Shown: in pieces, positions 576-57,722 of the stretch
Layout: the number at the start of each line of letters is the position of its first letter
Position numbering within the stretch: position 1 is the first letter of the stretch
Assembly (NCBI RefSeq): GCF_020745735.1
Contig: NC_083402.1
Location: 8,508,004 to 8,572,003, forward strand
From: Hemiscyllium ocellatum
Lineage: Eukaryota
Length of the DNA: 64,000 nucleotides
Direction: 5' to 3'
The notes under the pieces: generated by a model
What the model was told of the DNA's origin: nothing
Seen by the model: only the letters and a program-made list of their open reading frames with translations
The model's database searches: none
Translations under genes and position numbers: made by a program

Positions 576-934
576 TCAAAGGAGACTATAATATACGATG
601 TGATCTCACCCATGTCTTTCACAGCTGAAGGAGATGAGAGTGTAGAGTTGTGGTCTCAGCAAGGCCTTTCACTGCTGAAGAAAACTATAATGTACAGTTG
701 TGGTCTCACCACAGCCTCTTATTACAGCTGAAGGAGACTATAATTACAGTTGTGGTCTCACCACAGCCTCTTATTACAGCTGAAGGAGACTATAATTACA
801 GATGTGGTCTCACCACAGCCTCTTATTACAGCTGAAGGAGACTATAATGTACAGTTGTGGTCTCACCACAGCCTCTTATTACAGCTGAAGGAGACTATAA
901 TGTACAGTTGTGGTCTCACCAAGACCTTTTACAG
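576..934 (-). repeat. Tandem minisatellite of 7 units (50,53,52,52,53,50,49 nt) built from the ITIM exon
   Basis: Units start (minus strand) at 934, 884, 831, 779, 727, 674 and 624. Consensus ctgtaataagaggctgtggtgagaccacaactgtacattatagtctccttcag. Confidence 0.95.
879..934 (-). CDS. Exon 7 coding part: (A)VKGLGETTTVHYSLLQL* with ITIM VHYSLL
   Basis: Acceptor gacttccttcag preceded by a perfect TACTAAC branch point (955-961). Only phase 1 gives more than 5 codons. TAA at 879-881. V-x-Y-x-x-L fits the ITIM consensus. Confidence 0.8.
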
Positions 935-1698
935 CTGAAGGAAGTCATTCTTTTGTTAGTATTCTATTGCCTCGCAATAAACACTAACCATGTGATTCCT
1001 GTACCTAGATTCCTCCGAACCTCATATTTCTGCAATTTTTCTCCACTTCAAAAGTACACCGCTTTTTCATTCTTTCCGCCAAGGTGGGCAACATCACATT
1101 CTCTCACAATGTACTATAGTCTGCCATTTTTTTACCCAGTCAAGAGTGTGGCGTTGGAAAAGCACAGCAGGTCAGGCAGCATCTGAGGAGCAGGAGAATC
1201 GATGATCAGGATGAATCAGGATGGACGTCTTATGCCTGAAAAAAACATTGATTCTCCTATTCCTAGGATGCTGCCTCATCTACTGTGCTTTTCCTGGACC
1301 ACACTCTCAACTCTGATCTCCAGCACCTGCAGTCCTCACTTTTTCCAAATATTTACCCATTCACTTAAACTACGGATACAGTTTGCAGATGCTCTAACTA
1401 CTCTCAACAACTTGCATTCTTTCATATATTAATGTCATTGGAAAAAATGTAGTGTGCATTCCATGCATCTGGCCCCTGCATTCATTATCACTGACAGAGA
1501 TTGTAAAACATTGAGGACCAGGCACTAATCTCTCATTACAGATTGCCAATCCAAAAGCGATCTATATTCACTGCTTTTTGTTTGCTAGTCAAATCTTTAT
1601 TCATGTAAAAAATGATGTCTGCAGATGCTGGAGATCACAGCTGAAAATGTGTTGCTGGTCAAAGCACAGCAGGCCAGGCAGCATCTCAGGAATAGGGA

Positions 1699-1734
1699 AT
1701 TCGACGTTTCGAGCATAAGCCCTTCATCAGGAAT
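1699..1734 (-). ncRNA. Minimal type I hammerhead ribozyme motif
   Basis: AUUC-CUGAUGA-AGGGC-UUAU-GCUC-GAAAC-GUC-GAAU: 4-bp stem I, stem II and palindromic ACGU stem III. Confidence 0.7.
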
Positions 1735-2023
1735 GAGAGAGAGTAGCCAAGCAGGCTAAGATAAAAGGTAGGGAGGAGGGACTTGGGGGACGGGCGATGG
1801 AGGTAGGATAGGTGGACCTGGGGGGTGCAGTGAGAGAGAGACTCACTGAAATCCTTGTAGAGGGAGGAAGAGAGCTTCTTCAAGGAAGGCATCCTTGCCA
1901 GAGGATTCGCAGTAGGTTAAAATCTTCGAGTAAAAAATGAGGTCTGCAGATGCTGGAAATCACAGCTGAAAATGTGTTGCTGGTCAAAGCACAGCAGGCC
2001 AGGCAGCATCTCAGGAATAGGGA

Positions 2024-54140: not shown

Positions 54141-56230
54141 AGAATTTAGACAGCTGAGGAGAGTTGGTAAATTGGCAGATGAAATGCAACATGGGAAAGT
54201 ATGAGATAAAGCAGTTTGGAAGGAAGAATAGAGGCATTGACATTTTTCAAAATTTGGAGAAAGTTCAGACAGCTGAAGTGTAAAGGGTTTTGGGAGTTGT
54301 AATTCAGGTTTCTCTTAAGGTGAACGTGCAGGTTGAGTCAGTAGTTAGGAAGGCAAATGTTGTCATTCATCTTGAGGTGACTAGAATATAAAAACGGGGA
54401 TGTACTTCTGAGGCTTTATAAGGCTCTGGTCAGACCACATGTAAAATACTGTGAGCAATTTTAGGCCCCATACCTCAGCAAAGATGTACTGGCCCTGGAG
54501 CAGGTCCAGGGAACGTTCACAAGCATGATCTCAAGAATGAAAGGCTTAACATATGACGAACACTTGAAGACTCTGGGGTCATACGTGATGGAGTTTAGAA
54601 GGATGAGGGAGGATCTGATTGAAACTTTCAGAATACTGAATGGCCTGGACAGAGCAGATGTTGGGAAGATGTTTCCATTTAAAGGAGAGACTAGGACCTG
54701 ATGTCCCAGTCTTTACTCTAAGGGAAGACCTTTTAAAATGGAGATAAGGAGAAATGTCTTTGGCCAGAGAGTGGTGAATCTCTGGAGTTCATTGCCACAG
54801 AAGTCTGTGGAGGCCAAGTCATTGAGTATATTTAAAACAGAGGTAGAGACGTTCTTGATTGCCATGGGGACCAAAGGTTATGGGGAGAAGGCTGGAAAAT
54901 AGGTTTGAAAAACCTATCAGCCCTGATTGAATGGTGAAGCAAACTTGATGGGCTGAATGGCCTAATTTCTGCTCCTATGTCTTTCGGTCTTAAAATTCAA
55001 AACATTCACCACTCTCTGAGGAAAAAGATTTCTCCTCATCTCAGCCCTAACTGGCATCCCCTTCTTTATAAATTGTGTCACCAGTTTAAAGATCCCCCAA
55101 AGATGGTGGGATTTTCTAGGAGGAGAGGTTGATCCAGCTGGGCCTGTATTCATTAGAGTTTATAAGAAAGAGAGGGGATCTGATTGAAATGTCAAAGAGT
55201 TGGACATATGAGATACAGGGAAGATGTTTCCCCTGGTTGGGGAGTCACTGTCTCAGAACATGGGGTTAACCATTTTGGATTGAAATGGGGAAACATTTTT
55301 TTTCATTCAAAGGGTGGCCAACGTGTGAGATTCACTACCAGAGCAGGTTGTGGAGGCTGAGTATGTTCAATGAAAGAAATTGATACAGTTTGGATCAAGG
55401 GGTTTGGAGAGAAAGTGAGAATATGGTATTGAGATAGAAGACCACGTGGTGGCACGGTGGCACAGTGGTTAGCACTGCTGCCTCACAGCGCCTGAGACCC
55501 GGGTTCAATTCCCGACTCAGGCGACTGACTGTGTGGAGTTTGCACGTTCTCCCCGTGTCTGCGTGGGTTTCCTCCGGGTGCTCCGGTTTCCTCCCACAGT
55601 CCAAAAATGTGTGGGTCAGGTGAATTGGCCATGCTCAATTGCCCGTAGTGTTAGGTAAGGGGTAAATGTAGGGGTATGGGTGGGTTTCGCTTCGGTGGGT
55701 CGGTGTGGACTTGTTGGGCCGAAGGGCCTGTTTCCACACTGTAAATCTAATCTAATCTAACCAACCAAGATCATATTGAATGGCGGAGAAGGCCAAATAG
55801 CCTACTCCTGCTCCTATTTTCTAGAGATTCATAACCAAGAAACACCTCACCTACATGTATTTTGATAAGTATTTTGCAAGTTTCAATGAGAGCACCATGT
55901 GCAGCTCTGATCACTACACTGCAGGAAGGATGTGTTTGCATTGGAGAGGTGCTGAGGGGATTCACCAGAATGTTGCCTGGGATGGAGCAGTTTAGCTCTG
56001 AAGACAGACTGGACAAACTCAGGTTGGTTTATAGACTGAGGAGGGGTTACCTGATAGATTATGAGGGGCATGGACAATGTGGATAGAACGTAACTGTTCC
56101 CCTTAGTTGAAGGGTCAGTAAAAAAAGGAACAAAATTTCAAAGTGAAAGGCAGCAGATTCAGAGGGGTGTTTAAAGAAACAATTTTCACCCAGAGGGTGG
56201 TGATAATCGGGAATGCATTGTCTGGGAAGG
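54140..56230 (+). mobile_element. CR1 3' fragments with a young V-SINE at 55447-55761
   Basis: CR1 C-terminal motifs; SINE head-to-tail match. Confidence 0.75.
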
Positions 56231-57664
56231 TATCCCAACAGTGCAGAATAGGTCATTCAGCCCCTCAAATCCATACTAATCCTCCAAAGAGCATCCCATC
56301 CAAACATCAACTCACTCACCTACCTACTCTATCCCTGCATTTCCTTTGGCTAATCCATGTAACCTACACATCTTTGTGTCGATACTGCATACATTCACGT
56401 AGAACTCTGAGCTCAAAAACTGCAGGAATTTATGTAAAACACTCACTTTTTAGATTAGGATCAATCTAAACATCAGGTCATAGACAGAGAACACAGGGGA
56501 CTAACACCTTCAACATATTGTCTTGCTATCACCATTGTTAACAGCTAACCCGAGAATGCAACTTTAAAACAAAGGTTTTGTGATTTACACATGAAAGAAG
56601 TGAAACTACCACTGTATTCTAACAGATGAAAGGGTTAACAAACAATCAATTTTTCAATGTATAATTTCAGTTACATCACACTGCAAATTTTTGCTATAAA
56701 TTCTGTGTTACAATCGAGCCCTCCACAATCACCTGATGAAAGAGCGTCGCTCCAAAAGCTAGTGCTTCCAATTAAACCTGTTGGACTATAACCTGGTGTG
56801 GTGTGATTTTTAACTTTGTACACATCTTTGGACTCTGAAAGAAAACTGGGGCAACCGGACAAAACCAATGAAGAATGTACAAACTCCGCACAGAAGCTGC
56901 CAAAGGGTGAAATCAAACGCAGGCCCCTGGTGCTGTGAAGCAGCACTGCTAACCACTGGGCCACTATGCCACCCTGTTGTTGAGGCGGGAAACCTCACAA
57001 CCTTTAAAAAATACATGCATGAGCATTTGAAACGTCATAACATTCAAAGCGCTGGGCCAAGTGCCGGGAAGTGGCACTGGTGTAGATTTGGAGTAGTTTC
57101 TGTTGTTGGAGACTTGATGGGCCGAAGGGCCTCTTCTGTACTGTACGATTCTGTGGTCCTTCGAGATCACCTCTCATTCTTTGAAACTCTCGAGAGTACA
57201 GACCCAGTTTGCCCAATTCAATCTTCATGGTACAGTCCCGCCATCCTGTGAACAAGTCTGCTAAACCTTTGTTGCATTCCCTCTTTAGAAATAATATCCT
57301 TCCTGAGATAACAAATTTATACACTGTACACAGTATTCCAAGAATAGCCTTATCAAGTTTCTATATTATTGAAGCAAAGCATCACTGCTCCTGTGCTTAA
57401 ATACTTCTGGGACAACAGCTGACATTCCATCAACTTTTCTTATTGTTTTCTGCACCTGCATTTTACCCATCAGTGATGTTGTAATTATTTCACAAGCAAA
57501 ATGTTGCTGCCCATTTGAGGAACAGCAATGAAAAAGAACAAATATAGTGCTAAACAGTCCCAGGTTATGGAAACTTGCACTGTCAGCAGATGTGGTCATC
57601 AAGAAGAAGGGAATTGCAAGATTAATAAAAATAAATTTGAACAATAAATATTACAAGCACTTAC

Positions 57665-57722
57665 TATGACCCCGCACTGAAACTGACATGAATGCAGAGA
57701 GCCAAAAACAGAGAAAATTCAT
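57665..57722 (-). CDS. Exon 1 (signal peptide) of a predicted Siglec-15-like V-V-TM-ITIM receptor: MNFLCFWLSAFMSVSVRGH
   Basis: ATG at 57722 with A at -3. 19 mostly hydrophobic codons plus 1 nt, then a consensus donor A|GTAAGT (phase 1, matching V1). Lies in a non-repetitive island with an ETS-type motif about 75 nt upstream. The link to V1 across a 32-kb intron is inferred. Confidence 0.65.

Follow-up and report, generated by a model that had tools for sequence, protein, structure and literature searches.

A Siglec-15-type V-V receptor gene in the shark Hemiscyllium ocellatum, its probable inhibitory tail and its family of shark and ray relatives

What kind of receptor is encoded by two V-set exons lying among transposons in the genome of the epaulette shark, Hemiscyllium ocellatum, and where does its gene end? 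We addressed these questions in a stretch of 64,000 nucleotides (contig NC_083402.1, positions 8,508,004 to 8,572,003 of the forward strand), referred to here as the window. An initial annotation, made from the sequence alone, had proposed that seven exons encode an inhibitory receptor with a Siglec-15-like V domain, a second V domain, an uncharged transmembrane (TM) helix and an immunoreceptor tyrosine-based inhibitory motif (ITIM) at the C-terminus. Our analysis favors, with reasonable though not high confidence, a modified version of this proposal, namely, that the gene, which is annotated as LOC132829859, would encode a Siglec-15-type V-V receptor of the inhibitory type of a paired family, with the exons for the signaling tail located beyond the window. 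Coordinates given below are window positions; the gene is on the minus strand, its exon pieces were joined by script, and splice sites were read on that strand.

Gene model and identity of the two V domains

Two long minus-strand open reading frames (ORFs), 25157-25618 and 21107-21505, correspond to V-set immunoglobulin (Ig) exons. When the gene was rebuilt, seven pieces bounded by GT/AG were found to join into one open frame with phases 1,1,1,1,2,1 (Table 1), as had been proposed, although the product is 351 rather than 354 amino acids long. The first six pieces, all of them open and with canonical splice sites, have good acceptors and donors of the form GT(A/G)(A/G)G; they give a product of 336 residues, whose numbering is used here, and we regard them as genuine exons. 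Whether the gene had already been annotated, which the initial annotation could not tell, can be answered in the affirmative. The protein P0182 ('uncharacterized protein LOC132829859 [Hemiscyllium ocellatum]', 316 residues) is 100% identical to residues 1-316 of our model, and the LOC132829859 gene spans 50,986 bp, which is exactly the length of 57722..6737. This match independently confirms the leader exon, which is located 32 kb upstream of V1. Predicted relatives of this gene are likewise found in many genomes of sharks and rays, where automatic naming has been inconsistent.

An ortholog is present in Chiloscyllium punctatum (P0168/P0178/P0187), with 90.7% identity to the product of the H. 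ocellatum gene. Exon 4 is 100% identical to P0182 and 96.5% identical at the nucleotide level to P0168. Both species have an unusual short leader (...WLSAFMSVSVRGH), and the one from C. punctatum, MNSLYFWLSAFMSVSVRGH, has the same distinctive short SAFMSVSVRG form. Of the isoforms P0178 and P0187, one skips the TM exon, and would thus be secreted, while another uses an internal acceptor in V2; soluble alternative forms may exist for the H. ocellatum gene too.

To place the first domain, V1 was searched against PDB with phmmer and among 1.8 billion representative proteins, and a family profile was built from 15 V1 domains, with the following results. First, the best PDB match of V1 is human Siglec-15 (7zoz, E 6.7e-15), the next being CD33 (1e-7), and with the family profile Siglec-15 is found at E 1e-21 and the next match at 4.9e-10. 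Second, the matches from outside the family that were checked among the 1.8 billion proteins are mostly Siglec-15 from mammals, turtles, a frog, teleosts and lungfish, after which come sialoadhesin and other shark Siglec-like proteins. Third, a tree of 63 domains separates Siglec-15-type domains, V1 among them, from those of sialoadhesin and of other shark Siglec-like proteins with a support of 99 in the Shimodaira-Hasegawa approximate likelihood-ratio test (SH-aLRT). In this tree, the family V1 and V2 domains form two clades, with support of 99 and 100, which include the two domains of the shark gene. The homology search and the V-domain phylogeny, which had been suggested as checks, therefore bear out the claim that V1 is Siglec-15-like.

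The residues relevant for ligand binding agree with this placement. In human Siglec-15, R143, located on strand F directly after C142, forms a salt bridge to sialic acid, W44 makes a CH-pi contact, and the disulfides are C64-C142 and C95-C104 (PMC10264397). Residues W26, C46, C74, C87, C127 and R128 of V1 align to these functional residues. Further likenesses to Siglec-15 (human Q6ZMC9, 7ZOZ) include the WSM start, LPC(S/T)FTHP, RFR..GN, CRVE with the Arg after the F-strand Cys, and the extra C'-C'' disulfide. Thus, the identification of V1 as a Siglec-15-type V domain, in which the Arg, the Trp and both disulfides are kept, is well supported.

Beyond V1 the architecture departs from that of Siglec-15, an activating receptor made up of V plus C2, whose TM lysine provides the coupling to DAP12/DAP10 (PMC10264397, PMC7226832). 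In the shark gene V is followed by V, with neither the single C2-set domain between V and TM nor the TM lysine of the Siglec-15 group, and with a tail of the ITIM-bearing type. The second domain, proposed as a V domain in place of a C2, matches the V-set profile almost from end to end (Table 1), and tblastn with family proteins detected no missed C2 or other Ig exon in the window. The TM helix is uncharged, as also proposed, with no charged residue in its sequence or in the segment marked by the hydropathy scan. At the position of the sialic-acid Arg of V1, V2 has a Leu (YLCLVE, Leu241).

Some indication of how this architecture arose comes from the V-V-C2 proteins called 'Siglec-15' in Callorhinchus (P0026), Pristis (P0225), Heptranchias (P0032) and Protopterus (P0013), which contain the same two V types in tandem. 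In the tree, V2 is placed next to the second domain of the chondrichthyan proteins among them (SH-aLRT 96), so the simplest history would be loss of C2 from a V-V-C2 ancestor. The V-V-C2 proteins keep a third domain of C2/I-set type, which the shark gene and its family have lost; P0026 and P0013 have a K in the TM, and P0032 has a long tyrosine-rich tail ending in ...IYAAVV.

A shark and ray family with two receptor types

The search with V1 among the 1.8 billion proteins returned a large family with shark and ray members, present as RefSeq LOC genes, in which the V-V-TM arrangement without C2 is the rule. A census covering 87 proteins distinguishes two types. The first has an uncharged TM and a tail of 90-125 residues in which the motifs ILYAEI and V(T/I)YAAV occur. 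In the second, the TM follows the pattern LCIPLG(L/V)K(L/T)L..LLVM, in which the lysine is central, and the tail is 9-48 residues long and lacks tyrosine motifs; it is this lysine-TM type that NCBI tends to call 'Siglec-15'. In Heterodontus, Scyliorhinus torazame and Hemitrygon, the tree places the ITIM and lysine-TM types of the same species as sisters, for V1 as well as for V2. Since such sister relationships within species are the signature of paired receptors, the view of this family as a paired ITIM/Lys-TM receptor system is supported.

As for the H. ocellatum gene itself, its exons 5 and 6 align only with the tails of ITIM-type members, and not with those of the lysine-TM type. The nearest lysine-TM protein found in this species, P0190 (LOC132829874), is 68% identical to LOC132829859. 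The suggestion that the receptor is the inhibitory half of an activating/inhibitory pair is thus upheld by census and tree at the level of the family, in several species, whereas for this particular gene the closest lysine-TM member of the same species is only 68% identical.

Paired receptors are known from mammals, examples being Siglec-5/14 and Siglec-11/16, and, among other Ig receptors, KIR, PILR and SIRP. The shark family follows the same principle, with ligand-binding domains that are nearly identical and that come with an ITIM tail in one form and with a charged TM and a short tail in the other; the clustering of these forms is by species, as though they had been homogenised. Unlike the mammalian paired Siglecs, which are CD33-related, the members of the shark family are of Siglec-15 type and have a V-V architecture.

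The initial annotation had described a receptor of cartilaginous fishes. This fits the large shark and ray family, but the arrangement is not restricted to it, as two V domains of Siglec-15 type also occur in a salamander protein, P0019 (Pleurodeles waltl 'Siglec-12 isoform X4'), together with the tail motifs CTYADI and DVTYAVV, which are the counterpart of CTYASI and DVTYAAV in sharks. P0019 differs in being amphibian, in that the listed isoform has no obvious TM, and in having two V1-like domains in place of a V1 and a V2. Its combination of domains and motifs nevertheless means that the module of V-V domains and tail motifs is older than cartilaginous fish. A separate expansion in lobe-finned fish is represented by P0001 of Protopterus annectens, a protein of 1128 residues with seven tandem Siglec-15-type V domains.

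Siglec-15 is regarded as a single, conserved, activating Siglec, and it is a drug target in bone disease and cancer. It is tempting to speculate, with about even chances of being right, that a multigene system of paired receptors, derived from Siglec-15, existed in sharks and rays and perhaps already in the ancestor of jawed vertebrates, and that mammalian Siglec-15 would be its lone surviving activating half. The ancestral system so envisaged would comprise V-V ectodomains without C2, with an intact sialic-acid Arg and either an ITIM tail or a lysine TM, homogenised within species. If true, the Siglec-15 lineage once operated as a fast-evolving paired system; pathogens that mimic sialic acid are usually the force behind systems of this kind. 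The family also offers natural variants of the Siglec-15 binding site for study. Our full-text literature search found no paper on shark Siglec-15-like expansions, although the searchable library is limited and this is not proof of absence. The interest of these observations therefore rests in the family, as an undescribed paired system derived from Siglec-15, and less in the LOC132829859 locus.

The cytoplasmic tail and the end of the gene

The NCBI model of LOC132829859 consists of exons 1-5 and an extension across the exon 5 donor (AAAAG/gtag) to a TAG at 6739-6737, with the C-terminus ...TTSLKR. Exon 6, absent from this model, is real, because it matches the tail of the paralog P0003 (tblastn E 3.4e-9), is found in the tails of all three ortholog isoforms (P0168/P0187/P0178), and is identical between H. 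ocellatum and C. punctatum at 62/62 nucleotides, as against about 93% for the flanking intron. Since the read-through of the exon 5 donor drops this conserved exon and what follows, the RefSeq model is probably truncated.

What follows exon 6 is suggested by comparison with the C. punctatum locus (L001). Window 3917..1, read on the minus strand, and L001 32341-35298 align collinearly, with a single break caused by a 0.8-kb tandem array. In L001, exon 6 is followed by the ILYAEI exon (37010-37060) and then by the CTYASI exon (at about 42118). This collinearity puts the piece at 925-879, proposed as the terminal exon, midway in intron 6, and the tyrosine-motif exons (ILYAEI, CTYASI) would probably begin some 1.7 kb outside the window, past its first position. 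Family-type tyrosine exons (ILYAEI, CTYASI, VTYAAV) were not found within window 3705..1. The gene had been described as contained in 879-57722; with the seventh exon spurious and the tail exons of the ortholog mapping outside the window, it very probably extends past the window's start. The inhibitory function that had been attributed to the receptor loses the ITIM cited in its favor, VHYSLL, and yet is probably right on other grounds, because the tail of the ortholog continues with the ILYAEI and CTYASI exons.

The receptor so reconstructed is a type I membrane protein, with a signal peptide, V1, V2, an uncharged TM and a cytoplasmic tail made of mini-exons. V1 would bind a sialylated ligand by means of Arg128; the tail would continue past the window's start with the ILYAEI and then the CTYASI exons, as in the C. 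punctatum ortholog; and the tyrosine motifs, once phosphorylated, may recruit SHP-type phosphatases, dampening the cell. The lysine-TM relatives, which resemble DAP12-coupled Siglec-15 in their TM, would signal in the opposite sense, through a DAP12-like adaptor.

Several observations weigh against this reconstruction. First, the NCBI model stops after exon 5, without an ITIM. Second, the ILYAEI and CTYASI exons are predicted in H. ocellatum from another species only, and the models of the ortholog themselves end in read-through, instead of in the terminal VTYAAV exon that is usual in the family. Third, the ratio of nonsynonymous to synonymous substitution rates (dN/dS) against the ortholog is 0.79 overall, 0.91 for V1 and 0.43 for V2; the overall value fits diversifying selection but also relaxed constraint, and the near-neutral evolution of V1 fits a ligand-binding domain under changing pressure and, equally, relaxed constraint. 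Fourth, the zebrafish Siglec-15 ortholog showed no strong binding to the glycans tested (PMC7226832).

The first of these points could mean that the mRNA really ends as in the NCBI model (316 residues), or eight codons past exon 6. The product would then be a short-tailed receptor, with an uncharged TM and a tail of 18-45 residues without a tyrosine motif, acting as a non-signaling or decoy ligand binder, or signaling through a partner. In keeping with such an ending are the last residues of P0182, the gene span that ends at 6737, and the models of the close paralogs P0003 and P0177, which also end by read-through after the equivalent of exon 6. However, the donors of exons 5 and 6 are intact, exon 6 is fully conserved next to an intron that is not, and in C. 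punctatum each of the three isoforms continues, by splicing, into tyrosine-motif exons; moreover, gene predictors commonly default to read-through when the next mini-exon is far off. We therefore consider the short-tailed form unlikely. The H. ocellatum paralog models P0003, P0177 and P0154 share the read-through peptide ...GTGCTRTDQSPSI.DTVTSSV after the exon 6 equivalent, and these endings reflect either a systematic annotation error or a real short-tailed subgroup.

A gene copy in decay, disabled recently in a family with fast turnover and deprived of its tail by transposon insertions, would be in agreement with the overall dN/dS, with the heavy transposon load of the introns and with the 0.8-kb tandem array inserted in intron 6, which the ortholog lacks. 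Yet all six exons are open and have canonical splice sites, the cysteines, the Trp and the Arg are retained, and the ortholog is retained in another genus with several isoform models, which makes this explanation improbable.

The inhibitory-type receptor with a tail extending beyond the window also has to be set against the model as first proposed, in which exon 6 is spliced to 925-879, the protein ends in ...LGETTTVHYSLLQL, VHYSLL is a working ITIM, and the repeat units serve as alternative terminal exons. The piece does have an open frame and fitting phases, and in C. punctatum the initial unit of the array, too, gives ...VHYSLLQL followed by a stop codon. However, it lies within a minisatellite of 52-bp units whose copy number varies by species (7.1 copies in H. 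ocellatum versus 3.1 in the orthologous C. punctatum array), its acceptor is weak (ctgtaaaag/GT), and it differs from C. punctatum at about 4/47 positions (read by eye), no better than the surrounding intron, with its 89-93% identity. No tail peptide among the family members resembles the VHYSLL peptide, and no annotated isoform of the C. punctatum ortholog uses this piece. Downstream of exon 6, candidates for the ITIM pattern ([I/V/L/S]xYxx[L/V/I]) within the window are confined to the minisatellite or to scattered intron sequence. There are nine in the three minus-strand frames of 3705..1, five of them inside the 52-bp repeat, and because nine occur in that stretch, VHYSLL is at chance level. 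Exon 7 and its ITIM were thus rejected, the model that contains them being very improbable, and we take the C-terminal ITIM to be an artefact of closing the gene inside the window. The case illustrates that forcing a gene to close within a fixed window can create a false signaling motif.

Table 1. Features of the LOC132829859 locus in window coordinates.
Feature	Position	Strand	Description
Exon 1	57722-57665	-	Start codon and signal peptide MNFLCFWLSAFMSVSVRGH; GTAAGT donor, phase 1; equals the N-terminus of P0182
Exon 2	25617-25234	-	V1, Siglec-15-type V-set domain; Pfam V-set E 4.4e-10
Exon 3	21525-21175	-	V2, second V-set domain; Pfam V-set E 9e-18, profile positions 5-108 of 109
Exon 4	11598-11485	-	Short stalk, uncharged TM helix TIVICQLIISLLSLLFIFFILIIMFIIY, RKKG stop-transfer; from hydropathy scan and sequence
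Exon 5	6780-6741	-	40-nucleotide cytoplasmic mini-exon GYTQKIEHTTSLK; phase 1 to 2
Exon 6	3767-3706	-	Cytoplasmic mini-exon RNDPGSSSIPETDQVQQTTIP; phase 2 to 1; conserved, not in the NCBI model
Proposed exon 7	925-879	-	VHYSLL, stop at 881-879; inside the 52-bp minisatellite; not regarded as part of the gene product
Minisatellite	579-942	-	52-bp unit, 7.1 copies (Tandem Repeats Finder); in intron 6, contains 925-879
Transposon ORF regions	3916-4533, 13343-13912, 26835-27506, 35665-36468, 42713-43549, 49851-54243, 61780-62430	both

Repeats and transposon remnants

A probable origin for the minisatellite is found among the transposon ORFs that recur in the window. In tblastn searches it weakly matches, in two collinear pieces (E 0.001), the C-terminal part of these ORFs (LQLYKxLVRPxLEYCVQF), which we take as the putative C-terminal part of a reverse transcriptase from a long interspersed nuclear element (LINE); blastn found nothing. 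The repeat unit is thus a probable decayed piece of a transposon ORF, and VHYSLL an out-of-frame reading of that piece.

The tandem array inserted in intron 6 and absent from the C. punctatum intron is located at 1605-2347 and consists of 325-bp units (2.3 copies, 98% identical). An Rfam scan of the window gave no family at threshold. No hammerhead was matched in the array, whether at the gathering threshold or with E values up to 1, the only matches being sub-threshold ones to hairpins (microRNA-like) at 2294-2391. The introns and flanks of the gene are packed with ORFs from reverse transcriptases and other transposons, on both strands. In many of these transposon ORFs the motif ...PDEGLMPETS.LLLL.CCL.CCA... 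recurs, which resembles a tail family of LINEs or of short interspersed nuclear elements (SINEs).

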